Source of the DNA: Hyphochytrium catenoides | Lineage: Eukaryota > Protista > Hyphochytriomycota | NCBI GenBank assembly: GCA_900088475.1 | Contig: FLMG01002090.1 | Location: forward strand, 3,427 to 67,426 | Length of the DNA stretch: 64,000 nucleotides | Reading direction: 5' to 3' | Made by a program: the position numbers and the translations under genes | Notes under the pieces: model-generated | What the model was told of the DNA's origin: nothing | The model's database searches: none | The model's input: the letters and a program-made list of their open reading frames with translations, nothing else | Part shown: piece after piece, positions 17,588-64,000 of the stretch | Position numbering within the stretch: the first letter of the stretch is position 1 | Layout of the letters: each line of letters begins with the position of its first letter

Positions 17588-17632
<45 letters not shown>

Positions 17633-17715
17633 NNNNNNNNNNNNNNNNNNNNNNNNNNNNNNNNNNNNNNNNNNNNNNNNNNNNNNNNNNNNNNNNNNNN
17701 NNNNNNNNNNNNNNN
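17633..17715. other. Assembly gap (N run) adjacent to a CT microsatellite
   Basis: Run of N. The other gaps are at 19091-19174, 20297-20334 and 29895-29945. Confidence 1.
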
Positions 17716-18665
17716 TAAGCGAAGCACTGGTACTCCAGGATCTCTCCTTTGAAGTAGGTAAACTTCTTGCCTGAAGGCAGAAGCCAGCTCACTTCCGCCT
17801 TGGATGGAAGAAGAAAGCCCTGGAAGTCTTTGTACTCCTTGCACAGCGCCTCCCAGGGCCGGAGAGAGAGAGAACCGTCGGGTTCCGTAAAGTTTCTCTC
17901 TTCCGTCCACGCTTTGGAGATGAGCCCTCCCTCTCCCTTGAACTCTAAGATCACACTCGCCGTCACGCCGCTGACTGTTAAGCTCACCTCAACATTCGTC
18001 TGGTCTCTCTCTTTCCACCGAAGAGAAGGAGAGAGAAGACAGAGAGAGGGATAGAAGACAATCTCTGCCAAGTATCTCTGCAGCTCTCCCTGCATAAGCT
18101 CCTTCGAATGCTCCATCTTCGCGACAGGGAGAACGCCATAGACTCGTGCCTGCAGAGCAGCCTGCCCGTCAATAATCCTGTCACACACCGTGACGGACAG
18201 GAAAGGACCCAGCATCCTCATCTTCGCTGTCCAGGAGAAAGCAGCGAGGGAGAGAGACACGAACTGAGAGGCTTCGAAGGGAACATATCTCTCTCCTTTC
18301 TCTCCTCCCTCTTTCATTGCAAAGAGTCCTCTCTGTGTGAAGTGCACGTAGCGGGAAGACATTGGATCTCTCCATCCGTTTCTCTCCGGGCCCTCAGAAG
18401 AGGGAAGAACCCGCTCTAGATACCGCTGAACGAGCTTTGGGAGACAATTCATCCTCTCTTCCTTTCTCTTTCGTCTTCTCTCCGCTTCTTCTTCCTCTTC
18501 CAAGGAAGAGAGAGATGCCGGGGGTCCTTCTGGTGGGCTCTTTATGATGATCCATTCCTCTCCTTTCCTCAGCCACTCTGCGTACCGTGTCTTCATGGTA
18601 AGCAAGAGTCCCGAGGAGCTGACGACTGCCACTGCGGCGGCAGAGAGTAAGACTGAGATCCACAT
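17715..18665 (-). CDS. DUF6544/DUF6920-like protein with N-terminal signal/anchor, intronless (~316 aa)
   Basis: Motifs LPKLVQRYL, Q-x-G, FEASQ, FSWTA, QGELQRYLAEIVFYP, RPW...YKDFQG..LP..AEVSW.LPSG..TY match the mostly prokaryotic DUF6544 pattern (from recall). The ORF ends EYQCFA followed by TA-N at the gap edge, a probable stop. Confidence 0.8.
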
Positions 18666-33300: not shown

Positions 33301-36260
33301 AAGAAGATGAAGTTAAAGAGTAACTCTGTTGTTCACCCTTTGGGTCGCCGGTCTTGGCTGAGAGAGCGGAATTAGTATTGGGTAACCACCGTAGTGCCTC
33401 CTCCACATAGGCCTGACGTTGGAGAGACGAGTCCTCCATATGCTTCTGCAAGAGGCTGCTGGGGGGATAGGAAGAAGACAGAGGCTGCGAAGAGGGTGCA
33501 GTGGGAGATGCCTTCCGGACAGGTATCCGCACGATAAAGGTCGTTCCTTTCCCCAAAGTAGAATCTACTTCTATGGTCCCCGAAAGAAGCTTCACCAGCT
33601 CTTTTACCATGGGACAACCTATCCCAGAGCCCTCAATACTTCGTCCATGTGCACCTTCCACCCGATGGAACCTCTCAAAAAGACGAGGAAGCTCCTCTTC
33701 AGAAATGCCAATCCCGGTGTCTGACACTGTAAGTACAGCCCAATCTCCCTCATACATTGCTTCATTACCATTGTACTGCTCTCCATTTGCCGCTGTCTCT
33801 TTTCCAAGTCTGACCTCTACCTTGCCTGCTAGGGTATATTTGAAGGCGTTCGACACGAGATTCAAGATAATCTTCTCCCACATATCCTGGTCCACAAAAA
33901 CTTCTTCCTCGCCGGGAAAGCCCGTTACGTCTACCAGAAAACCTATGCCCGCATCCTGAAATGCAGATTGGAACATGCTCGCTATGTTCTTCGTTACGGA
34001 AGGCAAATCGGTGGGTATAAAGTTAGCCTTTTGTCGATCGGCCTCAATTCGAGAGAACTCTAAAAGTGAGTTCACTAGCTTCAGGAGGCGCAGAGAGTTG
34101 GTGTACGCCATCTCAAGCTTGTCTGAAGCTTCTGGCGGCAGGATACCGCCAGTACTATCAAGCACATCTCGAATATTGGCCAGACCTGTTCCACATGACG
34201 GTGGTGAAATAAAAGAGAGATTGCAGCAGGACCACGGGGGAACAGACGATTGCGTGTAAGGCCCAGCAGGAATAAACAGGAAGAATCGATCGATGTCTAT
34301 AAGCGGACGCAGGACTTAGAGGCACAAGAAGAGATATATGCAACAGCCCAACACGAGGAAAGGGTCAGGAATACAGTTCAACAGCCAACACGCCCACCCC
34401 TGGTCAAACTACTTTGGCTTCAAGATATTGAAAAGAGAAGAGAGTACTCCTTACCGAGATGAATGGGGGTCCTGAACTCGTGGGAGACTGTGGTGCAGAG
34501 ACAGAGGAGGGCGTAATATAAGAGGAAACGACCATAGCAAGGCGCAACCAGTAGAGGAGCGGAAACGAAACCGGACGTCTAGGACACTGCCTCACACACA
34601 GAAAGATACATAGAGATAGAGAACAGGTAAACACGTGAAGAGGGTCCAAAAGACATCTGAGAAGAGTGTCAGTAGCTTGGTGCTATTACTAGTTCCATGT
34701 GCTCTCTCTCCCCATCTTTTTTGCTTTTCTTCCATCACTTACTGTTTTGAAAAAAAGTGGTCTTTGCTCGATCAATCTCAGCCAAAGCCTCTGCCCTCAG
34801 CTTCTCTTCCTCAAAGGCTCTCGCTGAGGCGATGGAGGTCGCGAGCTGCCGCGCAACCAGATCAATGAAGCCTTGGTAGTCTTCGTCGCGTCTTTTTTCT
34901 GCGTTTAAGCCCAAGACAAGCACGCCCATCGCTCCATCTTCTTCAGAGAGGACGAGAGGCACGGAGACGGCGGAATGGGGAGCCTTCTGGCCCTCTGGAG
35001 GGGTCATTATCGTTGAAGGAAGGTCCGCTATCTCCGTCATCTTCCCAGACTGGATAACCTGCGCTAAACACCACGGGTCCTTGTCCTCGGCTCCTGTCCC
35101 TTCTGGCTCTCTATTTTCCTTTGAGAGTGTTACTCTCTTAGGAGCGAGCTGTGCTTGCAACCCACCGGCTATGCCCTTAAGAATGACGCTATCTCCGCTC
35201 TTCATATAGCAAATGGCGAAAGGAACGTCAGGATTCTGTTCATCGGAGAAGACTCGCATTGCTTTGTCCAAAGCCTCCTCTATTGACCTCACTCCCGCTG
35301 TCCGAGCCGCAAGAAGACGGAGAGTATGCATCCTTCTCTCTGCGAGAACTCTTTTGGTTGTTTCCGAAACAGGAGTGAAAAAGCCGCCAATCTCCCCATT
35401 TTCTACCGGTACTGGACCGTAAGAGAAGGTGAAGTAGCATTCCTCGTCGTAGCCATTCCGTGTGAGAATCATCTTTCTGCAGGGAGCACGAAGATAGACA
35501 ACGTCAGCAACAGATTGAGGACCAAGGCAGGATGAAGGAGTGAAGAAGAGACACCTCATTTACATATAATCAAGACGCTGCCTCTCTTTTTTGTCGCAAG
35601 ATGTCCTCCAATACTCTCTATTCTCAAGTAGTCCTTGGTCTCTTCGACCGCATAACGACTATTCCTAGACTCGTTTCACGAATAGATCCACAGGTACGCC
35701 CTGTCCCATCATCATTGACAGACAAAAAGCCTGGGGATTACTTACTTGTCCTCACTCCAATGCGCTTCTCTCGTCTCTCTGATCTGCTGCAAGACAGGAT
35801 CCATGAAGTCCCAGATCTCAGGGAATATTTCTCTGCACGGCACACCCAAAGCTCGAGGATGTTTCGTCCCTAAGATCAAGGTATACGCATCATTGTAGAA
35901 GCAGCACGCCTCTGGGCCCCACATAAGGATAATGGCGAACTTGGACGAGAGAGTGAGAGCCAGAGAAGTCATCAGGCTCTGGGGCCAGCTATGCATAGGC
36001 CCAAGCAAAGTTTCTTCCCACTTCTTCGCCTGGATCAGGGGAGCCATTATGGTGCTGCTGCCTGCGAAGGTTAGAGCGCTAGGCCCAAGAGACTGCTGCT
36101 GCTGTAGGAAGGAGGAAGACGAACTGGACGAGGAGAAGCCTAGCCCTAACGGTGGTGAAGAGCCAGTCCTTGGCAATAAGGTTGAAGAAGAGAATCCCTC
36201 CTCCAATTCCCTCTTCTCCTCTTTGCCCTGCTGGCCTCTCTCTTCGCTGAGAAGGGCCAT
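30351..36260 (-). CDS. Dual hybrid histidine kinase A: PAS-like - GAF - HisKA - HATPase - REC - PAS - HisKA - HATPase - REC (~1503 aa, no obvious TM segment)
   Basis: Exons 36260-35746, 35476-34743, 34487-34455, 34185-31594, 31255-30839 and 30571-30351, all GT-AG and in phase. H-box 1 SHEFRTP; N-box WEKIILNLVSNAFKYT; G1 DTGIG; REC1 DDNADMR..VSDIMMP..KPF; H-box 2 SHEIRNP; N-box QVLINLISNALKF; G2 GGSGMGL; REC2 DDN..LDVEMP..KPY. Confidence 0.93.
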
Positions 36261-40784: not shown

Positions 40785-43700
40785 ATGCAGATCTCAAACG
40801 TCCCAACGGGCCAACCTGGTCCAGCTTCTGCAGATGAGGTGCTGAATAGGGCCATACAAACCCTTGCTGATGACGCAAAGGCTAATCTGGGCGTAGCTTT
40901 CGCGCTTTGCTACGTGTACGATGGAAACACTGCACTGCTTAGGGGAATGACGAGCGAGCTAGACGAGCGTCATGTACCCAAGCGGATAGCTGTGCAACTT
41001 GATGTGCTTGAGAGACAAGAAGAAGAGCAGCATGAGGATCTATGGTCAATAGGGAGGGCTATTTCTTCAAGGAGGATGACGAAGGTGGTTGACTGCCAGA
41101 AGAAGGTGCTAAGGTCTCCTGCATCCTACTCTGCCGTATCCGTGCCTCTTGAGCTCTCCGCCGAGGACGATGGAGTTCTGGGCGTCCTAGTCTTGGGCTT
41201 CGATGCAGGGAAAGAGGTTGACAGGGTCTTGCAAGGCTTTTTAGAGCTGCTTGCTCGGCAGCTCGCTCACTTGATCTCCTCAACTCGGACCTACGAAGAA
41301 CAGAGAATGAGAGCAGAAGCTCTGGCAGAGATTGACCGCGCAAAGACTATCTTCTTCCAAAATAGTAAGTGCCAGCTGTGCTTGTTGGAGCTTCTCCTCG
41401 TCCCCATTGTTCGGCTCCCGATTGGTCTTATTGATAACTACTGACCCAGTCTTCCTGCCTTCTCGTCTCTCTTCGCCTATTGCTTACGACTGCCACCGGC
41501 TGTGTCCCCTGCTGGAACTTCTCTTTGGCGCTTGGCTGGGTCTTCATTAGTCTCCCATGAGTTTAGGACACCGATACACTTAGGTAAGGAGACAAGGCAT
41601 GGATGCTGTGTACTGGTGGCGTTTAACTGCGTCGTCTGCTTTATTAACTCCTAGTGCTGAGCATTTGCCAAGCCAATTAGGGCACAGTCATCATGTACTA
41701 TGACACTTCTGGTGTGCCTTTGAGCCGCCGCTGTTCTTCTCTCGGTACCATGATATGAGCATTGCCATGCCATGCGATTCACTTGTTCACCCTCACTTTC
41801 TCTTCTTGAGCTTCATTGCTCTTACTACTTCCTTTTCTTTGGATGCTATGTATGTTGACCTCTCTCTAATCCTATCTTCTCTGCTGTCCGTGCACTCCTA
41901 TTAATAGGGCTTGCGAATATCAGAGACGTGCTAGACAGCACGGCTGGTGTACTGCCTTTGGAAGCCACAGAAAAGCTAGAAATGGCATACAGCAACTCCC
42001 TGCGGCTTCTTAAACTCGTCAACTCTCTTCTAGAGTTCTCCACCATTGAGGCCGACAGGCAGAGAGCCAACTTTGTACCCGCCAATCTTTCTGCTCTCAC
42101 TAAAGACGTAGCCAGCATGTTCGAGTCAGCCTTTCAGGAGGCTGGGATAGCCTTCAGTGTAGACGTCGAGAGCTTTCCGGGGGATGTCGAAGTGTACATA
42201 GACAAGGATATGTGGGAGAAGATTGTGCTTAACTTGGTGTCTAATGCCATCAAGTATACTCTAGCGGGCAAGGTGGGAGTGAGACTAGTCCACGAAGCAG
42301 GTAATATGGAAGGCGTAGACCTTGGCCAGACAGATTACGCCGTCCTTACGGTGTCTGATACTGGCATTGGCATCCCAGAGAAGGACGTCCCGCTTCTCTT
42401 TAACCGCTTCTACCGCGTGCAAGGCCCTCAAGGTCGGAGTATCGAGGGCTCCGGAATAGGCTGTCCTCTGGTGAAAGAAATGGTCAACTTCCACTCAGGG
42501 ACCATTGAAGTACAGTCCAAGCTCGGTGAAGGGACCACCTTCACGGTGCGGATACCGATGAAAAAGGCTGTCTCTTCCTCGCCTGCCACTTCTTCTAGTG
42601 CTCCCTTATCCTGTCGCCCTTCCCGCAAGGTAGAAGACAATCTTCTTCAACGAAGAGCCTTTGTCGAAGAGGCTTTAAGGTGGTTGCCTGAGCAGTCTGT
42701 TACTCGAAAAAGCAAGGCCTTAGGCACCCTTCGTCCATCTCCTCTATTGATTGCAGAAGGAGAGAGGAGAGGGACGGACAGCTGTGCTTCTCCACTCTCA
42801 CCTTCAGCCAAGGCTGTCATCCTCCTCGTTGACGACAACGCCGATATGCGGAACTATATACGGTCTGCTCTGACTAGTGAGGGATACGATGTAGTCCTAA
42901 GGAATAATGGGCTGGAAGCATACCAGTATCTGCAGGATGAGAAGAACACGTTGCCTGATCTTATTGTGTCAGACATTATGATGCCCTACATGGATGGGCT
43001 GGAACTTCTTGATAAAGTGAGAGCGGGCATAAACAAGAGATTGACATCTCATACACCTGTTATTTTTCTCTCTGCTAGAGCTGGCAAGGAAGCGAGGTTG
43101 AATGGTCTGCAACAGGGAGCCGACGACTACCTGGTCAAGCCTTTCTCAAAGCAAGAGCTCCTCTCCCGTGTAGAGTTTCATCTGTCAATAGCGGTTACCA
43201 GGAAGAGATTGGAAGAACAGGTGTCAGAGCAAACGAAAGAGCTGCAGGAAAGCGAGAGGAGATATCGAGAGCTCGCAGAAAATGTCCCTGTAGGAATCTA
43301 CATCTTGGATACTGAGGGAAAAGTCACCTTTGCTAATGATTGTTGGAAGACTCTCTTCGGCCTAAAGCGCAGTCAAAGCGAAGAAGAAAATCTGGATGCC
43401 TGGGAGCCTCAGGTCCATCCTGACGACAGGGCAAAGGCAAAAGATCTATTCATTAACAGAGCTATTGAGATGAGTAGAGAGAGTTCAATGGAGTTACGAC
43501 TTGTCAGATCCGATAGCGCGGTGGCGTTTGTCTACGCTAGACAGATTCCTACCTTCAAGGACAGCAGACTCACAGGTTTCTTCGGGGTGACAACGGATAT
43601 CACCAAGACAAAGGAGTTAGAAGAGGAGAACATCAGAGCAATCAGGAGGACAGAACTTGAGCAGCGCAAGAGAGCAGAAGAAGCGGAAGAGAACAGAAGC

Positions 43701-45673
43701 AGGCTTCAGACGTATGTGGACGTCATCTCTCATGAGATCCGAAATCCCATCAGCAACATTTTGAACATTGCGGATGTGTTGAAGGATCGGTTCCTGGAAG
43801 TCGAGAAGATGTTGGCAGATTCTTCTGTGCTTACTTGGCATGATGACAGCAAAAGGAGTAGGACCTTCACTAACCTGCAGAATGACGTGGAGCTTCTCAG
43901 TGCGTTAGAGCTCTGTGCCAATCATCAGCGTCTTATTACCGACGACGTACTTGAGCTCTCTCGCTTACAGGGCACTCAGTTTGTCCTTTCTGACGAGGCA
44001 TTTGATCCAAGGTTGATGCTGAAAGACGTCATAAAGATGTTCCGAGTTAGATTGGAAGAGGAACAAGTGCAGGTTTCCCTGCACATGCCCTCTGAAGAAG
44101 AAATCTCACTCTTGCCGAAGACCCTCCTTGGAGACTCAAAACGAATCAGTCAAGTGCTGATCAACCTTATCTCCAACGCTCTCAAGTTCATGGCCAAGGC
44201 ACAAAGAAAGCATCTAATCATATCTCTCTCTGCTGACCCTGGTAGTCGCATATCGGCGAAAGGGAAGGAGGAAGAAGGGTCCAGAATACTGAGGTACACT
44301 GTGACAGACACGGGCATGGGGATGACCCAGGAAGAACAAGCCAGTCTCTTCCGTCCGTTTTCGCAAGCCAACATCAAGACCTACAAGGAGTACGGCGGTT
44401 CAGGTAAGCTCGCTTTGTCAGTCTCAGCCTCAATAACTTTTTGACCTTATCCTCTGACTTGCCGCCGTCCCACGCTGGATGGGCCTTGATCCCACTACTG
44501 ACTTCAGCTACCTGCTCTGTCTCTTGTCTTCAACATGCAAGCTTAAGAGGTCAGCGGTTTCTCTTGAGTTGGGCTTGGTATCTTGCTGATAGATCTCATA
44601 GATCCTTCTTCGTTATCGTCAAGTGACTCTGTACCTTCTTCTAATGCCTCCTCCTGTAGGCATGGGCCTCTTTATCAGTCGCATTCTGGTTGAGAAGCTT
44701 GGCGGCTCCATTCAAGTCAAGAGCAAGTTAGGGTGTGAGACCTCTTTCACCTTCACGGCGGTTTGCAAGTGTCTCGCGACGGCTCCATCCCCTTTGTCCC
44801 TATCTTTAGCAACTTCCTCGGCTGCTGACCCGTCACCAGCTCCTGGTAGCTTGAAGACTACGAGCAAGAGAGACAGCCTTCCTCTCGAGCAACTTTCTGT
44901 GCTTCAAGGAAAGCGAGTATTGATTGTCGATGATAATGTGCTGAACCAGAAAATCCTGAATAAGCAGCTCAGGTCGGTTGGTATGCGAACAGCGGTAGCA
45001 GACAATGGACTTGAGGCGGTACACATCATACAAAGGAGCCAATCTTTTGAGGAATCGCGCTTTGACATCGTCCTTATGGACGTAGAGAGTAAGTGTCGCT
45101 GGGAACACTGCTATCCTAATGTCTCTCGCTCTATCGGAGTCAAACGTCACTTTTTGAGGAAGGGAAGCGCTTTATTATATCATTTTGTTCTGCTTTCTTC
45201 ACGAGCTTGCATGCGGCAGACCAGAAGATGAAGATGTGTGATCCTTAATGCTGGTTTAAATAGCGACTGCTGACTGTGCGCGGCATCTGCCGCTTGCTCA
45301 TTCAGTGTCCGTGCTCTTTTAAGTAGTTTCCTCGCTCCACCATCATCGATGGTTCCTTTCTCAGCTGATGTTCAGTTCACTTGTCTTCAACATCTACAAG
45401 CAAGCAGGCAGCTGACATCCCTTTCTGCCGCATTTGCTGCTCTTCTTAGTGCCTGTACTGAATGGCGTGGAGGCAGTGCAAGAAATTCGCAAGTGGGAGC
45501 GAAGCATTGGACTGCCAGCGGTTGTTGTTATTGGTTTGTCAGGCAATGCACGCGAAGAGCACGTTCAGGAAGCTCTTCGAGCCGGCATGACGAGCTATGC
45601 CACGAAGCCTTACAAGAGAGAGGCATTGATCTCTAGAATTGTCAAGCTGCTGCTTCAGCAGCCGCCTGTGTAA
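40785..45673 (+). CDS. Dual hybrid histidine kinase B, paralogue of A: GAF - HisKA - HATPase - REC - PAS - HisKA - HATPase - REC (~1253 aa; start uncertain)
   Basis: Exons 40785-41364, 41551-41583, 41908-44403, 44660-45088 and 45450-45673. Same motifs and the same four intron positions as kinase A. The frame is open from 40512 but its first ATG is at 40785, so an upstream exon is possible. Confidence 0.92.
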
Positions 45674-47532: not shown

Positions 47533-49182
47533 TCAGATAAGAGTTACATTCTCTGAAAGCTCTTCGTCCTCCTCTGCATCCGCTTTCGTTGGGGAAAGGA
47601 AGCTGACATCCACGGCAGGGATAGCAGCGGCAGGTCCGCCCTTGGGAGGAGGGTCGATCACGATACCCGAGAGCTTTTCACAGAGCCTCTTGAAGATCTG
47701 CTGGAACTGAAGCAAACTTCCACTTCTCCGAGAGACAGAAACAATGCGAAGGTTTTCCTACAAAGAAGGAGAGAAAAGAGAGGGAAACAGACACAGAGAA
47801 AGGGGAATTGTTCAACATCAAAGACACTGAGGGGAGGATAAGCAGACGGAGTTAAGAGAGAGAGAGAGCCATATCCCTCTCTTCTCCATCTCCTATAAGA
47901 CTGCCTTTACCTCCTTGGATTCATAAATATTCGCAACCACTTCAGCTTGAGCTCCTGACTCCTGCACTAAGGCCTTGATTTTATAATTCTCAGGGTTAAC
48001 CTTCAGGTTCTGTGCTCCCATGGAGCGAAGACATTCCTCCACGATGCCCAACAGAGATGGAGCGGGAAGGGCGGAGAAAAAGTGTGTGTATCGGGCCACA
48101 TGCTCTGTCTGATGCGGCTCATACTGTATGGGCTTTGGTGTCTCTGCTCCGTAGTCGTAGCTTACGGATCGGACAAGGTTTGAGGAGAAGGGATCAAACT
48201 CGTCGCCTGCTCCTCCACCCCCTGACTGGCGGCCTGCAGCCTTCTGCTCCTTCTCTAACCTCTTCTTCTCCTCCACTTGCGCCTTCCTATTCTGTAAATC
48301 TTGGACTATGAGGGGCATTGGCGTGCTTCCTGCTTGGTACCAAGGATCGGCCTCAATGTCCGCAATGGTGGCTCTCCTTTTCGGATCGATGACAAAAATC
48401 TTGCTGAGTAACTGCATGGCACCAAGTGAGAACTTTGCATTGCGTCTATGGGCTTCCCAGAAGCGCTGATACCGCCCGTGGAGGAGCTGACCGAACCACC
48501 AGTCGGAAGGATCAGCCGTGTTGAAAGGGGGGAATGCAGCCAACATCACGAAGAGAACACAGCCAGCAGACCAAATGTCGGCCGCTGCAGCGTTGTATGG
48601 CTTTCTTTGTATCACTTCTGGGGCCATATAACATTGTGTGCCGCACGCTGTGAAGCTGAGAGACATAGCACCCTCCTCCTCTTCATGAATTGCAGCAAGA
48701 CCAAAATCTGCGATCTTTAGACTGAAGTCTTGGGCTAATAGAAGATTCTCTGGCTTGATGTCTCTATGATGCACTCCTGCTGCATGGCAGGCCTTTAGCC
48801 CTTGGATTAGCATCTGGAAGTAGGCTCTAGCGATGTGCTCTGGGAAGCTTCCCGTGTACATCATAAAATCAAAGAGCTCTCCGCCGCTGGCTAACTCGAC
48901 CACCAGGCAGAAGATGTCCTTCGTAGTGCCATTCTTCTTAGGGTAGTGCGCACCAAGGATGAAATCGATCATCGGCAGAACAAAGGGATGAGATACTCTC
49001 TTCATGGCAGTGATCTCTCGCTGCAGGTTGCTCATTTGCCGCTGTGTGATGCCTGACTTGTTCATGATCTTCAATGCTACATAGTCGCCTGTCACTCGGT
49101 GCCGTCCTAACTTGACTTTGCCCGAGATGCCCTTCCCTAATGTGTGAAGCACTTCATATTCTCCTATGTATCGCCCCGTCAT
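47533..49182 (-). CDS. CAMK-group (SNF1/MARK/CIPK-like) Ser/Thr protein kinase with a C-terminal KA1-like domain (498 aa)
   Basis: Exons 49182-47911 and 47757-47533. Motifs LGKGISGKVK, VALKIM, HRDIKPENLLL, DFG, TACGTQCYMAPE, DIWSAG. C-terminal 'IVSVSRRSGSLLQFQQIFKRL' is KA1-like. Confidence 0.95.
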
Positions 49183-51138
49183 CTTGCACCAACTCTGATA
49201 CAAAAGTCGTTGATGGTGCTATTTTGATGGACCTGTGCAGTGGCTGGACAATGTGAAAGTGAGCTGCAGTCACATAGACGAGTCAGAAGTGGAGAACACG
49301 GGATGATGCGATCAGTCACCGGGCTGAGCAGAGAGAAGACAGGAGAGAGATGTCAGATGTGCTGACCTGGTGTCTGTTATAGACTTCTGTCTTGCCCTGG
49401 GAAAGAGAAACTGAGCTTGAACTCCACACCCGCGAGAGTGTCCTGCTGCTCGTCTCCCGCGCTCTTCATCAACAACCTGTCTGAGCTGCTCCTGCTCCTG
49501 CTCCTGCTTCTGCTCCTGCTGCTACTGCTGCTGCTGCGCTTGTTCATCAGAAAAATTCTGGCGCGACTTTGTCCGTGGTCTTGGTCATCCTGCTGCTCTC
49601 TCTGACATTCTGTCACTTCTTCTCTCGTCTCCTCTGGCTCGTGGGACGCTCTTGTCGCGCTCTCAAATTAGTGGACTCTTTCTCTTACGGAATATTGTGT
49701 TTTAGAGTATTTAGATATATTTCTTGCACGTCTATCTCTATCTCGTGACCATACTTGAGGGTAGCTCTCGCTTTATCTGTCTCACTCTGTCTTGTCTCCA
49801 GCTCTACTGGTTTTCCGTACGACTATGAGGAGTTCTACTCCCTGCCCCGCATCCTATTCCTACTCCGCATAGCCTGACGACCATTGTGGAAAATAGCCTC
49901 TTTCTCCAAATAATATTCCGCCTATTGTGGAGGCTGTGTTGAGGGTTGACCATCCCTCTGACATTCACTCTGCGTGCAATCCCCTTAAAACATGTCAGAA
50001 TAATATATCAACAACATGCACTCTGCCACATTCTTTGACGGAGAGCAGAATAATATTTGGAACACAGGACCATTAGGATTCACTATAACTTTAAATATGG
50101 AGATATATATCCTGAATGAAGATCTGCATTGTTCAGGTTTGTGCACAGCAGCCAGACGGCGACCTGCTGCTGGTGCGGCCTGTGTACCGCCGCAGGAGTG
50201 ATGGTCGATAGATTGATAGATAGATAATAATAGCTTGGCTGTCTGTCTGGTCAGATAAAGCAGGGAGGGCTGGCGGCGGAGGACAGGATGATGAGGGTGA
50301 TGGACACGGTAAAGGTGCCTATGATGCGTGGCCCAAGTGACAGAGCAGCTCTTCAGAAGCATGAAGAAGGTGATTGGAGAACAGCTCTTTAGCGAAGTCC
50401 AAGAAGAGGAAGAAACGTAGTAGTAGACGAAAGCATTCATCAATTATTATGGCGGCGGGGAAGAAGGAGCAGCTCACATCACGAAAGAGCAAGAGTGAGG
50501 AAGCAAGATCATCAAAGAAGAGGAGAGTTGTTTCTTCTAAGAGGAGGAGGGAGGAGGGCCACTTGGCTGCTTGCATGACTTGATAATAATAGTAATAACC
50601 GTCCATAGTTAGATATATAAGGGCAACTTATCCTCTGCAACCGCTGTCTTCCTTCTTCTAGTAGTAGCATGCCTTTGTGGAGGCAAGCGAACCGTTCTGG
50701 AGCCACATAGAAGAGCGGAAGATATGAGAGAAACGATGTGTGGCAGCAGCAGCGTTGGTGGCGAACGCCATGATCCCTTCTATCTAAGAAGAGGAAGGAC
50801 ATTATTGTAGCCAGACCAACATCATACACAGCTCAATGACTAGTAGGAAGGATCATAATAGTAGATGACGACGACCGAAGCGAACAATCCACCTACTCAT
50901 TTCATCGGATTAGCTATAAGCAACAGAGTATAGCATCATCGTACTTTTTTCTAAAGTGCCCACTGGTATTCTCCAAGTGCGGAGGGCACAATCAATGTTG
51001 AGCTCGCTTATGATAGGCAGGGGCATGTCTCTAGGCGACAGTCACCGAAATATTTTGCTTTTCGCAACTACGTCGCGTCACGTTACGACTCTGTAAGGAA
51101 GACACTAGAGTAGAAGGTAGTATAGCTCATAGTTAAAG

Positions 51139-54224: not shown

Positions 54225-57200
54225 ATGGGCAGGGAGCGAAGAAGCTCTGGTCCTTTCCTTTCCTTCTTTACCTTTTTGATGCTCCTTGTTATAAGTGCGC
54301 GTGCCGCCTCTTCCCCTTCACCCTCAGCCCCTTTACCTATTGCCGATGAATGTGATTGTAAAGATCGCACTGCCATCACGATTCACCTCTTCCTGCCCAT
54401 CGACCCATTCGCGCCCTCTCAGGATGCTCTCTATGCCTTGCGGACTGGCTTCTTAGAGGCCACAAAACGCTCCAAAGTGCGCTCACAGCTGCACTATCCG
54501 TCCGCCACTGACTTTGTCGATCTCTATTTTAGCAACCAGACGATAGCAATGACGGGACTTCTCCATACCTTTCTACAAGGCCAAGAGGGAAGAGAAGATG
54601 AAGGAAAAACAGATTCTCTCTTGGTCTACTATATCGCAGGCGTTGATGATAGGGTAGCAGCTCTGAGAGAGAGAGGTTATCGCGTCTTTACCTTGGGTGG
54701 CGTGCCCTCGGACATGTCTCATTCGAGGGCCCTACACATCGGAATGGACGACTATGAAGCTGGTCGACTGTTGGGAGAGTCATTTGTTCATAAGAAGTGC
54801 TCCTCGAAGACCATTTGTTTTCAAGACTCTACTCATTCCGCGTCCCGTATGCGCTGTCAAGGCTTTATGGATGCTATTGCCGCTTCGGGGCCAGAGGAGA
54901 GCCCAAAAGTCGTCGTCCTGGATGGACTCTCTGTAGATGAGATGAAGAGGAAGCTGGAAGCTGGCCTCCCCGGTGCATCTGGAGTTTTCATCCAGAGTCT
55001 TCAATCCCTGAACCTCCAGAGCTGGACAGAGGTTCTCAGAGCTTTTCGGGGGCAAGGGAGTACCCTGTTCTCTCCTTCCTCCTCCCCCTCCTCTTCGTTA
55101 TCTACGCCTCCAAAATCTTCTTCCTGCGTGGGCAGTGTTGGCCATACAAGGAATGGGGAACTTTTGTTACGGGAGGGGCTCTTGGACGTCCTCTATACAG
55201 ACCAGCCGTACCTTCAGGGGTTCCTCTCTCTCTTTCTTATGACGTATTATCACACCACTGGCATGAAGCCACGGAATATCAATAGTACACTGCACGCCGG
55301 ACCTCGTCCCTCGTATCCTGGAACAGAGGCGGAAAGTGATGAGAAGGGCAGCGGTCAGAGACAGGGAAAGGGCGGAGAGATGGCAGGCAAGTGGACCAAG
55401 GAGAGCGTACGTTATCGTTTCTTGACTCATGGCAACGGTGCAGATTCTTTCTGGGCCAGTTATAAGAATGCTACACTCACCGCCGTGGAGGATATCGGTC
55501 TCCCTTTCACAGACTGCACATCCCTCTCCCTCTCTCCATCCAGTTTATCTTCTTCTCTCTCATCTTCCACGTTTCCTTCTCTCTCGAACAATGGTGCTTC
55601 TTGTACCTCGGCCTCTACGGACTCGTTTCGGTATATCTACGGCGTAGGACACAATGCTGAGCTGGAGCTGATGGGTCCCCATCTCCAGCGCTTTATAGAA
55701 GAAAATGCATCTGCTGTCATACTGTCTATCCCCTCTTTCACAGCACTAAATGCTTCCCTTCAGGCTCTTTCCCGCTCAGGAATTCCATTCTTCACAGTCA
55801 ATGCTGGAGACAAGCTAGAGTCCGCGATGGGCATCAAGCCCATACATTATATAGGCCAGGTCGAAACCTATGCGGGCTTACAGGCAGGCAGGATGATGAA
55901 GAATATAACGAAAGGAGATGCTCTTTGCCTCCTTTTTCCTGACCAAGTGAATCAGCAGGAGCGCTGTGATGGCTTCGAACGGGGCCTAGGAAGGACAGTC
56001 CATAGATTATCTTCGAGTTATGACGGGAACATTGTTCAGCAGAATCTTCTCTCCTTTCTTTCTTCTCAGTCCTCTCTCTCCTCTGACAACTCCTCGACGA
56101 ATGTATCCGTAGAGTCAATATTGGCCACATCCGGCGCTGTGTCTCTCTCTGTCCTGCATTCCCTCTCGGTCTGGGGCACATTCTCCCAATACAAAGTGGG
56201 GACTTTCGACAACATGCCTAAATTGCGTAGCTCTCTTCAGGAGAAAGAGCTATTTTTCTCCATTGATCAGCAGCAGGGCCTGCAGGCGTACAGCTCTGTC
56301 ATTCTGGCGCATTTGTATGCAATGACAGGGCAAAGGCTGGTTGACGATTCAATCTTCACAGGGCCGGCCTTCATGCTGCAGTCGGACTCCATTCAGGAAC
56401 TTGCCTGTCAGTATGAGAGGACATGCGCCTCTATAGGGCTTGCTGCTTCTCTCTCCTCTCCTCATACTTCTTCTGCCTCTCCGACGGTTGCCTCTTCCGC
56501 GTCAGTGCTCCCTTCGGCAACTGGGACGACATCTTGCAGGAAAGATTGGATTGGCGATGGCTGGTGCGATGAGGAGAATAATAAGAAAGAATGTCAGGTA
56601 CGGACACAGAAAGAAAGGGAGGAGGGGTCCAGTTGCTACGGGTCCCGGTTTGGCAATGTCCTCTCCTATGGTACTTACTTTTCTCTGCACTTACCTCCTC
56701 GGCATTCAGTGGGATGGCGGAGACTGCTGTGAGCACAGTTGTAAGAGTTCTAGCTTCCTTTGTGGCACTGACTACTTCCAGACCCTTTACAACGCATACG
56801 ACTGCAAGAAACCTCTATGCACGGCAGGACAAAGGCCAGCGGAGAGAGAAGGAGGAGGAGGAGAGATCTCGTGCGAGATATGCCCCAAATGTAAGATAAT
56901 AGATGGAGAAAGATAGCTCTGCCCGGAGAATGCAAGCTCTATCGGTGGCATATCATAACAGCTAAAAGTGGAAGCTGACGGCGCCTTCCTCTCCTCAGAT
57001 ACGTTCGGCGTTGATGGCCGTAACTGCATTGTCTGTGTGAACAATGTGCTCTCGAGGAGGGTCCAATGTATGGGAGGAGAGACTCTTCGCCCGGCTGTGG
57101 GCTTCTGGATTGACAGGCAGAGCCTGAAGGAGGAGTTAGGTGACGGCCAATCCTCCAACAGCTCGGTAGGTTCCTTCATTACTGTTTGGCTTCCTCCTTC

Positions 57201-60200
57201 TCGCGCTAAACAAGCTATGGAAAGAGGAGTCTCTGAGCTAGCCCCTGTCCATCTTCCCACTTACCAGCAAAGATGTCTAATAAATCTCTCCGCTCAGTGG
57301 CAGCCAGTCCCCTCGTTCAACGTCTAGATCCCTTTTCTCTCTAAAATGAGAGCGATTTTGCCGCAGCTTCTTAGCGCGCGGTCCATCTTGCCCGCTTCTT
57401 TGGCTTGCTAAGCATCTTCTTTCTCCTGATGTCTCCTGCTTCAGTTTCCTCCTTCTCAGGACTATTATGAGGAGATTTTGAGCCGCCATGTCTACCAATG
57501 TCACCCCAACTGGTGCACGGGTAAGTGAGGAAGGCGATGCTCTAGAAGCTTTTCACTCTCCTCTCGGCGTATCTTGCCCAGCGCCGTCTGCCTACTACAT
57601 CGCTTACAGCTATGACCTAGAAGATAGCGACCTCTTCCTATCATCTGTGCTCTGTGGTGTGTCATCACTGGCTGGAAGTCTTTGTTCTTGAGGTTACCTG
57701 CCATCTCTCTTGTTGCACTCTTCTTGGTCCTCTTGATTTTGACTCTTTTCGAACCTCCTTCCTTCTCTTCACTCCCTATCGTCGCTATTCTTCTTCAGGC
57801 CAGGCTTCCGACGCAGACGACCTCCTGCTTGGATACACTGCCAGCGGCTGCATCAAAGGGACGTTGGAAAGCTCTCCTCTTTGTATGGCTTGTGATGAGC
57901 TCCATGGGTATAGGAAGATGGGCGTGGAATGCCAAGAGCACGAAGGTGAGGGATGATAAGACGAGAACAAACAGTGAAGAGAAGGACAGCTCGTTCAGGG
58001 CGTGAGTTGAGGGAACCCAAGCGAGAGGGACTGAGAGGAGCTAACTAGGGCTTCTCGTCATGTTGCTTCGGAGGAGTGATGTGTAGAGATTCAGCTCTCT
58101 TCTTCAACGCCAGAAGTAGTGCGAACATTCTTCCAAGCTGTTAGAAAGTTGTTACATTCCCTCACCCTCAGTTGTTTCTTTTGCTTGGCTTGTACACTTC
58201 TTCTCTGAGTACTGACATTATCGATGTCTTCTCTTCTCTCCTCTTATGTGACCAGTTTGCTCTGATGTGGGTCGCCCTTACATCTTTGTGGCCTTTGTCG
58301 TTGGAGGCCTCTTTCTCTCTTTCTACGTCTTCACTTTCCAGCTACGGAAGGACCGCATCCGCGATAATGCCAAGGTCTCTATCCTTCTCTTCTTCTTGCA
58401 AGGTAAGCGCCCATTCTTCGGTTCATGAGGCTACTAAGGCGTCGTTAGATCGAAGAGAGCAATTTGCCAGTGAATAATGGAAGAACGGCAAGACGTGGAG
58501 CAACAGAGAATGAGAGACAGGAAGTAGAGACGGAAAGAGAAGGTGTAGATAGTATAGGAGAAGTTAGACAGTGAGACGGCAATGAGAGTAGAATAATAGG
58601 AAAAACGCTGGACGGAGTTATGGCAGGGCGCTGGAGAACGAAGGTCGTTAGTCCTAAGTTCGACTCTCTCACTCACTCTCTTCTTTTCTTCTGGGATCTT
58701 GGATGGTTTCTATCAGTCCAACTGAGCTTCAGCTCTGCGGTACCTTCTGCTTCCGAGGAAGGAGCGCTACGATTCCTTCGCCTCATAATGCTAGATTTGC
58801 CTCAGATCGTGATCAAGGATAAGGTACTTCTTCCAGTTTCGTCTTTCTCGTTGTCGGATTCTCTCTCTCTCTCTGTCTGTTTCCGTCTCTCTTTACTCTC
58901 TCCCTTTCTCTCTCTCTTTGTCTCTCCCCCTCTCTCTTTCTCTCTCTGCTCTCTCTGTCTCTTTCGCCTTCTCTCTCTTCCTCTCTCTCTCTTTCCTTCT
59001 CTCTCTTTCTCTCCCATTCATTCTCTCTCCTTCTCTCTCTGTCTCTCTCTCCTTCTCTCTCTGTCTCTCTCTCCTTCTCACTCTTTCCTTCCTTCTCTTT
59101 CTTTCTCTCCCATTCTTTCTCTTCTTTCTCTCCTGCTGCTCGCTACTTCGTGGTATCGCATGAAACTGCTTTCTCTCTCTGCTTTGGTAAGCCATCGTAG
59201 ACGCTCGTCTCTTTCTGTCTATTGAATTGAAATAGTCGCGCTCTACCGACATCCAACATGAGGAAGAGATCCTCTTACTTCCCTAGAGTTCTTCTCACTT
59301 CCCTCTTTTTTATTTAGCTGAGCCCTATCAACTTCTCTCGCTCCCTCTTACTTTCCTCGTTAGGGTTGCAGCCCCTTTGGGTATGGCACGCTTGTGGTTC
59401 ATCTGGGCCTGCGCTCTCTTTGCGTTCTGTATTTCCTTCTCGTCATCCTCTTCACCTGCGGACTGTACGCCGTGAAAGAAGGAAGAAAGGTACAACGCTG
59501 GCGGAGGACGCCACACAGTGAGCGGAAGAACACATTGATCGCACTGTAAGCGGACAATGACTCTTTCTTCTTGTCATTCCTTGCATCATTTCTTCATTCT
59601 CTCTCCTCTCTCTCTCGTCCCTCTTTCTTTCCGCGTTACTCTTTTTTCAAGCCATGGTCTCCGCCTCATGGTCTCCTTTACATTCTTCCTGCTATTATCT
59701 GTATACTCTGGCACTGTCCACATCGACTCTGTCTTCCCACAAAGAGATCCGCTGATGCCCTCTCTTGCAGCTTGCTATCAGTGCCTCTGGAGGGCAGAGT
59801 TAGAGACAAACTTCTCCTCAAGGTAAGCGCAACCACCAAGGCACAGACTCGCGGCAGATGGAGAACGGCAGACGAAGACATACCGACACACACAGAGAAA
59901 GAGAGAGACAAAGAGAAAGAGAGGGGAGGAAAAGAAAGGGAGAAGAAGAAGTGGAGGAATGGCAAGGAGATGTAAAAGCGAAAGATGACCACCACATTAT
60001 CTGTCTCTCTTTCGCTGTCATCCGCCTCATCTCCTCCCCTAACCATTTTTTGCTTCTCATGTCCTTTCCTTCCTCTATGAGCCTTCTCCTACCTTCCGTT
60101 TCCCCTTACGATCAAGCTTTCCTCTCTTCTCCGTTTCCGGGTCTCTAATCACTCTTGTCCTCCGTGCTGACTCTCCCTCCTTTGGCTGATCAAAATGACA

Positions 60201-62832
60201 GACGGCCCAGATCCATATCTATGTGCTTTTCTACCTTCTCTTCCTCCCCGCGTTCCGCATGGCCTCTCAGCTGTCAACCTGCATAAAGATAGGGAAAGAG
60301 AAGGTAGGGGCAAGTTCAATGTGTTCTGCGTGTCCATAATGATATCTGAGCTTAGTCTGCCGTTCGACGTTAGCATCTGGAGGTCTCTCTCGTTCTCTCG
60401 TTCTCCTCTCTCTTCCCTTTCTCTTAACATTTCTTAGCGTCTCCTCTCCTTCTTCCCATCTCTCCTTCCATCACTCCTTCCATCAATCATCGCCGTTCAA
60501 TGTTGGCATGTCTCAAGGGATCTAGTCATTGTGTGATCCTCTCCTTTAACTGAACTCTGGCAAACCCTCACTTTCTGTTTTGTCACAAGTCTCTTCAAAA
60601 GTTTCGTCTTTCTATCTCTCCCTCTCACTCTTTTCTCTCTCTCGTTCTCTTTCTCTGTCTTCCTCATCACTGACAGATTAACAAACGACTGCTGTCTCTT
60701 GTTCTCATATCTGTCTCCCACGTCTTTACTGCTCTCTCCTGAAGGTTCTCTTGGCAGATGCAAGTCTGGACTGCAGCGACTATCCTCTCGCGTTAGGCTT
60801 AGGCTACACGGTCTGGGTCCTTCTGTGCTTCTTTCTTCTTCTCCTGTCGCTTGCGCTTTATGCAATTAGAACGCTCTCTGAAAAGGAGGAGAAAAAAAGA
60901 ACGAAGCAAAGAGAGAAAGAAGCCACCAGAACCGGGAAAGAGAAGATCCAGAAAGAGATGAGCGAGTTCCCAGGTTCAGACCCTTGGACGAGGAGGCGGA
61001 AGGGTAGGAAGTCAGGGTCTTGTTTCCCCTTTTCCAACTCCTGCCTTCTTTGGACTTCCGGCGACGGATAGGGTCCTCTCCGTGTCCCTCTCTTCCTTCT
61101 GGCTGTTCTCCCTTTCTCTCTCTCTCTTTCTCTTCCCTGTTCCCTTTTGTAAGCCATACTATGACTCGACGTTTTTCTTGCGCTTGTTTGACTTTCTCTT
61201 TTTAGTCTGAAAGTCTCTCAAGGCCCCACACCCCTTCCCCTCTCTCTCTCTACGTTAATCTCCTCTCTTTCTCAGAATTTACTTTCTCTCCTCTCGCTTA
61301 GTTTGGCGAGCTCTCCTGGCGCCTCTGACGCACGACTACCGCCCCGGCATGGAAGGGTGGGTTGGATGGAAGGTGGGCCAACAGGCAATCATGGGCTACG
61401 CTCTCGACTGTCTCTGGCAGGTGGAGCGGAAGATACTGGTTCTTTGGGGACTGTGGCTCTTCTCCGTTTTCCTCCAGATAGCAGCACAGCCGTACAAGGG
61501 TGAGTAAACGGAGAGAAACTAGAAAGAGAGAAAGAGAGGGAGAAGAGAGAGAAGAGAGAGAGAGCATTGTCTACTTAGAGATACTAGAGTGGCCTTGTGA
61601 TATTTTATACGGTAGCAATGGCCATCGAGTGAAAGATAGAAAAGAGACAGAACGGAGACAGGAGAGATTGAGGAGAGGAAAGAGGATAAAAGATAGAGAG
61701 AAAAAGAGAAACATGCACAAAGGCCAAAAACATCGTCTAATGCGTTATCCTGTCCGCGTCCATTGTACGGTGCTCCCTCTGTCCTTCATCCGTCCTTCAT
61801 CCGCCGTGATCGTGTCTATTGGTCCTCATACGGCGCTCAGAACGGATGCATAATCTTCTTGAGACTCTCTCCTGCTTTCTCTGCTTCCTCTCTGTCAACC
61901 ACTTCCTCTTCTTCAAGACCGGCGTCTCGTCCCTTTCCTGGATTTCGATCGTGATGTCAACCTCCCTAATCTTTCTTATTGTTATCCTGCTCGCGGCGGT
62001 AAGTCAACAGTCAAGGTCTCCTTCTTCGTCTTTGCCATTTCCTCCTTTTGTCACCTCATTTGTCTCTCCTCTAAGTGTGCACAACCTTGTCCGTAGCCCT
62101 GCCCTCTCTGTCTCGTCTTTCTGTTGTGCACTCTCTCATGCTCTCATCCTTTCAGGGTCAGGAAGATGTCCCTTTGTTCCTCACTAGGACGCGCTCTTCT
62201 CCTCCTTCTTCTCCCTATTTTTTGTCGCTTTTCTTCATCTCGTTCCATCTCTCTCTTCTCTACTTACGCTCTCTGCCTTGCAGATCTGGAGCTTTCTCTC
62301 TCTTTATGACCGGCCTCTCTCTCCGCGATCTGTCCACCCGGACGGTGGACAAAGCCAACAACAAGACACCGTTTATATCCCTGGCTCTCCCTGTTCCCAG
62401 CTCGATCAGCTGCAGCCTCCAACCACTTCTCTTCCTTCCTTTTCTCTACTTCGCCCTTCTGCGGCAACGGTAGACAGAGACGAAACGGACGACAGAGAAG
62501 GAAAAACCACGTCGGAGATAAGGAGAGAGAGAGATCTAGCGGAAGAAGTTCATGCTGCGCACTCACGGAGAGGCTCTGCGGAGCGCCTGAAGAGAGGAGA
62601 AGAAAGGGGAGAAGCACGAGAGATAGGGAACGACCAGAGACCTAGCAAGCTGGTGAAGAGAGAGGATCCTGGTCGCAGATCCTCTTCACAAGAAAGAGCA
62701 GGAGGGCCAGATGATCTCAAAAAGGCTCTTGCTCGAGTGATGAGAGAGGCATCAGGCAACGTAGGCGTTCAACCGCCTAATCCCTCTTCTAACGCGGAGA
62801 GACGTTCTTCTCCCCGAAGGCTGACTTCATAG
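54225..62832 (+). CDS. Multi-pass membrane protein (~1557 aa): signal peptide + 2 type-I periplasmic sugar-binding domains + LNR/Notch-like repeat + Cys-rich stalk + roughly 8-9 TM segments + cytosolic tail
   Basis: Hand-built 14-exon model whose phases all close: 54225-56597, 56710-56890, 56999-57165, 57460-57520, 57799-57945, 58256-58402, 58717-58823, 59364-59545, 59771-59822, 60438-60530, 60745-61003, 61302-61499, 61841-61998, 62284-62832. PBP motifs: HIGMDDYEAGRLLG, RCQGF, QPYLQG; THG..DSFW, IGQVETYAGLQAG, ERCDGF, GTFD, IDQQQGLQAY. LNR: CRKDWIGDGWCDEENNKKECQ|WDGGDCC. Middle TM exons are less certain. Confidence 0.82.
58860..59135. repeat. Intronic (CT)n-rich low-complexity tract
   Basis: About 275 bp of C/T sequence inside intron 7 of the membrane-protein gene. 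Confidence 0.9.
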
Positions 62833-63189
62833 AGGCCTCTCTCTCGCTCTCTCTCACATTCTCTCTCTCGCTCCCTCTCTATGGGGAAATCCTTAGCGAA
62901 GCTTACGAGCTCTATGGACGAGGCAGGAGAGAGAACTGTGAGTGGAAACATGTCTCTTCAACATTCATTGGTCTTTATAATAGTAGAAGGCTGCTTACGA
63001 GAGAGACAGATGCCATGAGGGATCGTGGCGCAAGAGAAGAGAGAGAGAGAGCGAGAGAGAGAGAGCGAGAGACAGAAGAGCAATGGACAGACCCAAGATT
63101 TAGCGGGAAGAGCGAGACCACGAGAAGAGAGTAATAAAGAAGGCTAGTGATAGATAGTAACAGTACTGCCAGGGGCGCATGACGCCGTC

Positions 63190-64000
63190 TCAATTAGCGA
63201 CAGGAGTGGTAGGCGCTGAAGGGAAAGGAGAGACAGTAGCCTCTCTTTTTCTCTTTCCAGAGAGAGAGGGCTCGAAAGAGAGCTTACTGGGCACTGCCAT
63301 GAAATATCTCTCCATGGCCTGTCTGAACCTATTGGAATAGAGATCTGGCTGGACAATCGTTGGCTCGGCTTGTCCTGCAATCATCCCAACGCTCTTTCCA
63401 AGGCTTTCCACTCTCTTTGACAGGTCATACTGTCTCATATAATCGATGATGCCCACGGCTAGGACTCTCTCTCTCTCATTTATTCCAAGGAGAATGGAAT
63501 AGTCAACAACGTTGATAATAGAGAGAAAGAGAGCGTCGTTCTCGATGGCAGCTTGGAAGAGAGTGCTTGGATACTCCTAGAATGATCAACGAGCGTCGTG
63601 GAGGCCAAGAGAGCATGAAGAGAGAAGGTGAGAGTGGATCTCATCGATAGAAGTGCGTGAACAGTGAGATCGATCGTGGAAAAAAGAGAAGTATGCGATA
63701 TGAGCTGCGAGCTGCAAAAAGCGGTCTTTTCAAGGAGGTGCGAGAAAGAGAGAGAAGAAAGAAAGGTCACTGAGAGAAGAAGGACGAAGAGAGCTGTGGC
63801 AAAACGCGATCTCTTTCTCTGTCTCTCTCCCTCTCTCTCTCTCTCACCTTGACTGGCAGGGGAGCTCCCTGAGTGAACTTTAGAAAGTTCACATCCAGCA
63901 AGCTCTGCAGCTTTTTTTTCCTTTTCTTCTCTCCAGCAGTTGGCCCATCCTCTGTGTCCTCCTCTTCTTCTCTCTCTTCGCAGAACCTATTCCTAACATT
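63190..64000 (-). CDS. PIKFYVE: 3' end of 1-phosphatidylinositol-3-phosphate 5-kinase (PIKfyve/Fab1); gene continues beyond the window
   Basis: Exons 64000-63848 and 63576-63190 encode LLDVNFL...AIENDALFLSIINVVDYSILLG...VGIIDYMRQYD..KRVES...EPTIVQPDLYSNRFRQAMERYFMAVP, the Fab1 PIP-kinase C-terminus. Confidence 0.93.

Follow-up and report, generated by a model that had tools for sequence, protein, structure and literature searches.

We describe here a gene of the protist Hyphochytrium catenoides whose predicted product is a CRMP-type receptor with a new sugar-binding ectodomain, and not the representative of a wholly new receptor class. The gene lies at positions 54225-62832 (plus strand) of a 64,000-nucleotide stretch of contig FLMG01002090.1 (GenBank assembly GCA_900088475.1, positions 3,427 to 67,426), referred to below as the window, to which all coordinates refer. 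From an extracellular N-terminus, the protein of about 1550 residues is predicted to run through two tandem periplasmic binding protein (PBP) domains, an LNR module and a Cys-rich stalk into a nine-pass membrane core, and this core is a likely, though not a proven, member of the family that comprises CRMPs, GCC2/GCC3 proteins, SadA and the Flc/Pkd2 proteins (TRP_C-type), and not of the class C 7tm_3 family. All the features described in the original prediction, which had been made from the letters of the window, were recovered where it had placed them; its views on the novelty of the architecture and on the nature of the membrane family are revised below.

The sugar-binding ectodomain

The long first exon matches the Pfam family Peripla_BP_4 at 80.9 bits in two stretches (cut-off 35.1); when the domains are split, domain 2 reaches 57.9 bits, and domain 1, with 27.0 bits, stays under the same cut-off. 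By sequence, the nearest solved protein to domain 2 is a CUT2 monosaccharide binder of the Protein Data Bank (PDB 4ru1, E 8e-11). The AlphaFold2 model of exon 1, built with 41 homologues (pTM 0.81), contains two complete flytrap folds with strands and helices alternating in both, and its Foldseek matches in the PDB are sugar binders only: 4ru1 (E 9e-17, TM-score by target 0.79) and further ribose, glucose/galactose, arabinose and allose binders (TM-score by target up to 0.84). The tandem type-I sugar-binding ectodomain of the original prediction is thus borne out by profile and by fold.

In a 42-sequence alignment, domain 2 retains all the family-invariant residues that were checked (H402, N526, E547, G551, R580 and G583) as well as the near-invariant F661-D662 and Q682, while domain 1 has replacements at conserved positions (G160V, Y162S, F305V, D306G and Q326D). 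Because the conserved residues are kept in domain 2 and lost in domain 1, ligand binding is likely to take place in domain 2, with a probable structural or regulatory part for domain 1. The ligands of solved Peripla_BP_4 proteins are monosaccharides and AI-2 only (PMC10443332). In fold and in conserved pocket positions, domain 2 resembles the bacterial CUT2 binders (4ru1, RbsB, the glucose/galactose, arabinose and allose binders, and LsrB for AI-2); these are single domains, soluble or lipid-anchored, that dock on ABC transporters or chemoreceptors, whereas the H. catenoides protein has two copies in cis on a eukaryotic membrane receptor, the first of them degenerate. At E up to 1, matches to ANF_receptor and NCD3G were absent both from exon 1 and from the stalk, whose exons were searched one at a time.

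A word-index homologue search with exon 1 gave no match, probably owing to its low-complexity words and to the length window, and the best protein match to exon 1 in the whole libraries has 30% identity. The long relatives of this exon come in two layouts. The first, tandem PBP plus 7tm_3, is found in diatoms, in Mucochytrium and in many metagenome proteins, and is the layout of most of the tandem-PBP relatives checked outside the picozoan group described below. Such receptors from Seminavis, Mucochytrium and marine protists (P0002, P0018, P0034 and others) have an ectodomain homologous to that of the window protein (28-30% identity, E down to 2e-30) but differ in their transducer, which is a seven-helix class C 7tm_3 module instead of a nine-pass CRMP-type core. 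Among marine protists, tandem Peripla_BP_4 plus 7tm_3 is widespread and was observed in P0011, P0016, P0018, P0023, P0030, P0034, P0054, P0057, P0066, P0079 and P0085; several proteins of this layout carry the source label 'ABC transporter substrate-binding protein', and in P0027 the tandem Peripla_BP_4 is fused to HisKA.

The second layout, a tandem PBP with a nine-pass region, is that of a picozoan group of about 1550 residues, in which the PBP domains are followed by PA, Ephrin_rec_like and DUF7630 domains and by a nine-pass region outside the coverage of Pfam. These picozoan and marine-metagenome proteins (P0004 and P0154-P0161) share with the window protein the order of parts, a near-equal length (1550 residues) and the same nine-pass core. 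What sets them apart is a PA domain together with clear Ephrin_rec_like/DUF7630 repeats, and no Pfam LNR is present in P0004, the one checked; their ectodomains are about 21-28% identical to that of the window protein and the core match is weak. They are unstudied, and their automatic source label reads 'simple sugar transport system substrate-binding protein'. The architecture had been presented as new, which does not stand, since a tandem PBP, a Cys-rich stalk and a nine-pass core also occur together in this group. An assembly independent of the class C family of G-protein-coupled receptors (GPCRs), also put forward in the original prediction, holds for the membrane part but not for the ectodomain, most of whose long eukaryotic relatives checked sit on 7tm_3. 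In a tree of the ectodomains the long branch of the window protein falls outside the main 7tm_3 clade, and a shared and a separate origin of the window and picozoan layouts are not separable in this tree. In the literature we found no description of a sugar-binding PBP on this nine-pass core, and a search combining Peripla_BP_4 with 7tm_3 returned nothing relevant. The Entamoeba protein EhVFT was considered as a precedent and set aside as not comparable: it is anchored by glycosylphosphatidylinositol and has no membrane core (PMC12965686).

LNR, stalk and continuity of the gene

In the list of open reading frames, exon 1 appears with its read-through as a frame of 835 residues (54225-56732). 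The LNR, a Notch-type (Notch/Lin-12) calcium module that begins at the end of exon 1, scores 18.0 bits with Pfam LNR (PF00066) for the exon-1 part alone and 29.7 bits (E 9e-7, cut-off 21.2) for the 37-residue peptide across the spliced junction, in agreement with the earlier claim of an LNR split by intron 1. Because the LNR passes the Pfam cut-off only across spliced intron 1, exon 1 and the downstream exons are predicted to encode one protein. The match covers profile positions 9-35 only, with the signature GDG.CD...C.WDGGDC, and four core cysteines, not six, are read from the sequence; the module may be a reduced LNR. Residues 771-978 hold 21 Cys, the final module aligning with the juxtamembrane module of the family, and the predicted stalk is Cys-rich and EGF/ephrin-receptor-like.

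A GT-AG chain of 13 exons and 12 introns extends over 54225-62832(+) and gives 4551 nt and 1547 residues with a sole stop at 62830-62832, the phase being kept without a stop across the 12 successive introns. By this model, the locus is a single spliced gene, as had been foreseen, there with 13 introns and about 1557 residues. The quoted motifs are all in the spliced protein (KVSILLFFLQ, GCSPF, LLADASLDC, LTHDYR, QPYK, NLLETLS, CEICPK, CIVC, YQCHPNWC, CIKG and PLCMAC). Three junctions (marked by a slash) rebuild motifs of the membrane family, namely FFLQ/VQLSFSS, GRK/PWSPPH and QPYK/ERMHN, the last with the exact P-to-N spacing of the family. The 3' limit of the gene is set by a convergent PIP5K exon at 63193-63456(-). 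When intron 1 is retained, the frame continues for 44 codons to a stop (56598-56732), and this could yield a soluble isoform, a secreted binder of 835 residues that lacks the membrane part.

The splicing is based on homology and on polymorphism between strains; no RNA run was found that covers the whole gene or exon 1. Strains were compared over 56850-62840 of the window with independent Logan contigs from three DNA runs (X1, X2 and X3) of the same species. Exons make up 36% of the compared stretch, and all 12 listed indels fall inside introns of the model. Of the five single-nucleotide polymorphisms (SNPs) listed in exons 2-12, four alter a third codon position of the model frame and are synonymous, and the remaining one is D>N. 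Exon 13, with the cytoplasmic tail, is fast-evolving: six of its strain SNPs are non-synonymous and four are synonymous, and the majority of amino-acid differences between strains fall in this tail. X2 and X3, which come from one sample, depart from the window and X1 at many sites, and therefore at least two strains or haplotypes were sequenced.

An exhaustive search for an extra or alternative exon between exons 8 and 10 gave 22 phase-compatible candidates with similar scores (18.8-20.3 bits for the 15 best), and none stood out as the fourteenth exon of the original prediction or favoured one of the two starts of exon 9. The contigs X1 and X2 are free of indels at 59218-59879, the region of exon 9. 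A frame-1 alternative for the fourth transmembrane helix (MVSFTFFLLLSVY...) was rejected, as it cannot be joined in phase and the strain contigs have no frameshift there. The window has about 50% G+C, with GA/CT-rich introns, and resembles the nuclear genome of a protist. Low-complexity GA/CT stretches at 60450-60650 and 61450-61650 (introns 9 and 11), and also at 58850-59050, reach a contig depth of up to 58,000 compared with about 400 elsewhere, and are therefore genome-wide repeats; one intronic repeat stretch has zero contig cover.

The nine-pass membrane core

Hydropathy gives eight clear hydrophobic segments and a weak one, the sixth transmembrane helix (TM6), which was placed by alignment; basic loops read from the model sequence after TM1, TM3, TM5 and TM7 are consistent with the positive-inside rule and with an N-out, C-in orientation. 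With a hidden Markov model (HMM) of the nine-pass family the spliced membrane part scores 16.1 bits, against -0.8 for the reversed sequence and a maximum of 6.8 in 500 block shuffles. With a 7tm_3 profile built from five matches it scores 1.5 bits, a value reached by 38 of 500 shuffles. That the membrane part is not 7tm_3 but matches a family of Cys-rich multi-pass proteins, as had been suggested, agrees with these scores. Run on single stop-to-stop pieces of the window, the family HMM found nothing significant. The hhalign alignment of the window protein with the family is collinear over the whole module, starting at the juxtamembrane Cys module and ending at TM9 (local E 1.6e-3 and 1.5e-2), and a profile search with the membrane-core alignment added six matches from lineages already seen.

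By eye, several motifs are common to the window protein and to published CRMP cores: QP[YF]K-x4-N-x-LE, [LV]L..(D/P)S..C and LALY/LVLY. The corresponding stretches are QPYKERMHNLLETLS in the window and QPFKRISDNRLELTS in a CRMP, VLLADASLDC and YFLRAAMSVEC or LLILYHMPSQVC, LALYAIRTL and LVLYVNRKTL, and PLTHDYR..GW and GFLxNGY..YWYWE. The conserved core of CRMPs consists of two EGF-like modules and nine membrane helices, and homologues are known in Dictyostelium and Paramecium, with many diverse CRMPs in Chromera (PMC9815656). CRMPs are N-out and C-in, are proposed to be host sensors for rhoptry exocytosis and carry host-binding Kringle, MAR and lectin domains (PMC9670195, PMC9815656). The 'poorly characterised protist family' of the original prediction is this CRMP or TRP_C-type core, whose function has been studied in Toxoplasma, Plasmodium and Tetrahymena (PMC9670195, PMC9815656). 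Like TgCRMPA/B, Plasmodium CRMP1-4 and Tetrahymena CRMP1/2, the window protein has Cys-rich EGF/ephrin-receptor-like modules directly before a nine-pass core, the same predicted orientation and the core motifs QP[YF]K...N.LE, [LV]L..S..C and L.LY. It differs from them in its tandem PBP and LNR ectodomain, in place of Kringle, MAR, lectin or long repeats, and in its far smaller size, and it has no known link to rhoptries or mucocysts.

An AlphaFold2 model of the core of the picozoan relative (P0004:990-1450, pTM 0.74) has nine long helices. Its Foldseek matches are Dictyostelium DDB_G0281931, SadA, yeast Flc1-3 and YOR365C, and Schizosaccharomyces pombe Pkd2 (E 5e-6 to 2.5e-5, TM-score by query about 0.5). 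Among clusters of the AlphaFold database, it matches a Plasmodium CRMP2-related protein (E 2.4e-11), a Tetrahymena GCC2/GCC3 protein and many proteins described as 'TRP C-terminal domain', Ephrin_rec_like or DUF7630; the ESM Atlas result for the core is in line with this family. No solved structure matched the picozoan core in the Foldseek search of the PDB (E 0.095 or worse). The same fold also joins Dictyostelium Tmc proteins to CRMP2, GCC2/GCC3, SadA and Flc1-3/Pkd2 (PF06011).

Through this relative, Flc1-3, YOR365C, Pkd2 (PF06011 TRP) and SadA would share a predicted core fold with the window protein, to which they have no directly detectable sequence similarity. The ectodomain of SadA consists of EGF repeats, unlike that of the window protein, and fungal proteins of the Flc/Pkd2 type carry an ML-like TRP_N domain. 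Reconstituted Pkd2 of fission yeast permits the passage of Ca2+ (PMC9727806). A literature search combining the name CRMP with polycystin, SadA, Flc1 or TRP-like found that name in none of the matches listed.

Feature coordinates and neighbouring genes

The coordinates of the gene model and of other genes in the window are collected in Table 1. Beside these, the window contains two hybrid histidine-kinase genes in head-to-head orientation, with large open reading frames at 31466-34162(-) and 41928-44441(+), each with HATPase_c, Response_reg, PAS and HisKA in that order; such a pair is unusual in an organism whose sequence looks apicomplexan. The convergent PIP5K exon is the final one of its gene (PF01504, 34.3 bits, profile positions 240-287 of 288), which extends past the end of the window.

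Table 1. Predicted exons and domains of the receptor gene, followed by neighbouring genes (window coordinates; a slash marks a splice site).
Feature	Coordinates	Strand	Evidence
Exon 1, 791 aa: signal peptide, two PBP domains, S/T-rich linker, LNR start	54225..56597	+	Donor CAG/gtacgg at 56598; Peripla_BP_4 80.9 bits; AlphaFold2 pTM 0.81
Signal peptide, aa 1-27: basic n-region, 14-residue hydrophobic core, ARA before inferred cleavage	54225..54305	+	Hydropathy peak 1.83 at aa 11-29; modelled helix 11-27
PBP domain 1, aa 49-362, degenerate	54369..55310	+	Peripla_BP_4 27 bits; high-pLDDT fold
PBP domain 2, aa 396-733, intact CUT2-type, with Ser-rich low-complexity insert	55410..56423	+	Peripla_BP_4 57.9 bits; 4ru1
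LNR module, aa 770-798, intron 1 (56598-56709) inside	56532..56730	+	Spliced peptide 29.7 bits
Exon 2: LNR end, start of Cys-rich stalk	56710..56890	+	Acceptor ttcag/TGG, donor AAT/gtaaga, phase 1
Exon 3: Cys-rich stalk, CIVC	56999..57165	+	Splice sites; SNPs 57063 and 57099 both synonymous
Exon 4: Cys-rich stalk, YQCHPNWC	57460..57520	+	Splice sites, phase; aligns with juxtamembrane Cys pattern of the family
Exon 5: EGF/laminin-like juxtamembrane Cys module (CIKG...PLCMAC...GY...EC)	57799..57945	+	Splice sites; placed by HMM and hhalign on the DUF7630/EGF-like module before TM1 in the family
Exon 6: TM1 and first half of TM2, KVSILLFFLQ	58256..58402	+	Hydropathy 2.31; collinear HMM match, profile 14-94 to aa 938-1027
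Exon 7: second half of TM2, extracellular helix	58717..58823	+	Needed by phase between exons 6 and 8; FFLQ/VQLSFSS like family YAQVFSLASS
Exon 8: GCSPF loop, TM3	59364..59489	+	Hydropathy 2.56; Cys on invariant family Cys
Exon 9: TM4, extracellular Cys loop; start uncertain (alternative 59745)	59652..59822	+	Phase 0 at both ends; PWSPPH with family GWSQSH/WS.NH over the exon 8/9 junction
Exon 10: LLADASLDC loop, TM5, K/E-rich cytoplasmic loop; donor uncertain (alternative after 60973)	60745..61003	+	Hydropathy 2.74; D.S..C on invariant S and C, also in CRMP cores
Exon 11: LTHDYR..W helix, TM6, TM7, QPYK	61302..61499	+	Top-scoring HMM stretch, 12.7 bits, E 3e-6; motif as in published CRMP cores
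Exon 12: NLLETLS, TM8, TM9	61841..61998	+	QP[YF]-x6-N spacing across the exon 11/12 junction equals that of the family; SNPs 61980 and 61995 synonymous
Exon 13: TM9 end, 176-aa R/S/P/E-rich cytoplasmic tail, stop	62284..62832	+	Acceptor ttgcag/ATC; stop 62830-62832
RNI-like LRR_6 protein	5834-8050	+	
PAN-domain protein	14495-17191	+	
DUF6920/DUF6544 protein	17532-18662	-	163 bits
Chk1-like Ser/Thr kinase	47893-49200	-	

Discussion

On balance, we think it probable that this protein is an extracellular sensor of a monosaccharide or of AI-2 that signals via its nine-pass core, a judgement that covers the architecture as a whole and the mechanism read from it. In such a mechanism, the second flytrap domain would shut on a monosaccharide or on AI-2, a furanose-like signal of bacteria, and the LNR and stalk, rich in disulfides and rigid, would transmit this closure to the core. 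The core would then signal inward, either by Ca2+ entry, as is reported for fission-yeast Pkd2, or by way of partner proteins towards regulated exocytosis, as proposed for the CRMPs of Toxoplasma and Tetrahymena. The receptor might thus serve as a chemosensor for food or bacteria.

Several points weigh against this interpretation. The link between the window protein and the family is moderate (12-16 bits), with 10 of 20 invariant columns matched (block-shuffle mean 6.3, maximum 10); TM6 is weakly hydrophobic, and the count of nine passes is partly based on homology. The evidence on the core fold is one step removed, the folded core being that of the picozoan relative. On the side of the gene model, a search for RNA runs over the whole gene and exon 1 found none that would support the splice junctions, the acceptor of exon 9 (59652 or 59745) and the donor of exon 10 (after 61003 or after 60973) are uncertain, and the present model is one intron short of the earlier one. 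Proteins of this layout have no known ligand, channel activity, partner or localisation. Furthermore, the channel function of Flc/Pkd2 proteins is debated, the earliest role assigned to Flc proteins being that of flavin carriers.

Four other explanations were weighed. The protein might be an uptake device, whose tethered domains pass sugar to a core acting as transporter or pore, in the manner of ABC importers with fused substrate-binding domains. Its ectodomain is indeed closest to ABC-transporter binding proteins, the yeast relatives of its core are named flavin carrier proteins and the picozoan look-alikes are labelled, by automatic naming, as sugar transport binding proteins. However, no transporter-type fold matched the core in the PDB (Foldseek E 0.095 or worse), the same tandem cassette is mostly found on signalling modules (7tm_3, and once HisKA), and the relatives of the core that have been studied, CRMPs and Pkd2, are tied to signalling, exocytosis and Ca2+ and not to nutrient import; we therefore regard uptake as unlikely. 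An adhesion or contact receptor, in which the PBP domains would act as lectins for glycans of prey, host or substrate, would suit the fold match of the core to SadA, a substrate-adhesion molecule, and the host-binding Kringle, MAR and lectin domains of CRMPs. It is nonetheless quite unlikely in our view, given that the ligand shut inside the cleft of solved Peripla_BP_4 proteins is a free monosaccharide or AI-2, polymers not being known as ligands, and that the small-ligand pocket signature of domain 2 is complete.

An artefact of the gene model, with a secreted 835-residue binder and a membrane protein encoded by two genes, or with a downstream pseudogene, could appeal to the want of RNA support and to the unspliced frame, which stops 44 codons beyond the donor and on intron retention would give a soluble form. 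It appears very improbable in the face of an LNR that is whole only across intron 1, of 12 consecutive introns in phase with no stop, of the purifying selection that strain variation indicates in the downstream exons and of the picozoan proteins, single chains whose domains come in the same order. A divergent class C GPCR, with a flytrap and a Cys-rich domain on 7tm_3 and coupling to G proteins, is rejected, even though most long eukaryotic relatives of the ectodomain bear 7tm_3 and TgCRMPa has been called GPCR-like by PANTHER (PMC9670195): the 7tm_3 score of 1.5 bits was reached by 38 of 500 shuffles, hydropathy gives eight to nine segments for the core, and the fold model of the family is nine-helical, its GPCR matches in the PDB being no better than E 0.2.

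Returning to the sensor that we favour, a further and more doubtful proposal is that it may be the first CRMP-family receptor with a predictable class of ligand, a free monosaccharide or bacterial AI-2. It would then be a natural chimera which shows that ligands operate the CRMP/Flc/Pkd2 core as a transducer, perhaps by gating a Ca2+ pathway, and the same cassette would have been mounted, in the course of protist evolution, on two unrelated transducers, 7tm_3 and the CRMP core. CRMPs are needed for normal development of Plasmodium in the mosquito. To our knowledge, it has not been established what they bind, how they signal or how their nine-pass core is built. In Toxoplasma, they are essential for host-cell invasion (PMC9670195, PMC9815656). 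The H. catenoides protein is a likely member of this family that bears one of the best-understood ligand-binding folds in biology, and its likely ligands are cheap to screen. It offers a tractable system in which to test the core for transduction of ligand binding and for Ca2+ conduction of the kind seen with Pkd2 of fission yeast. With the same tandem cassette on class C cores in diatoms and other protists and on a CRMP-type core in the window and in Picozoa, it would also be a clear case of the shuffling of a sensor domain between unrelated transducers. If our interpretation is true, this receptor would be a simple experimental system for studying how the CRMPs of apicomplexans convert an external signal into rhoptry exocytosis.

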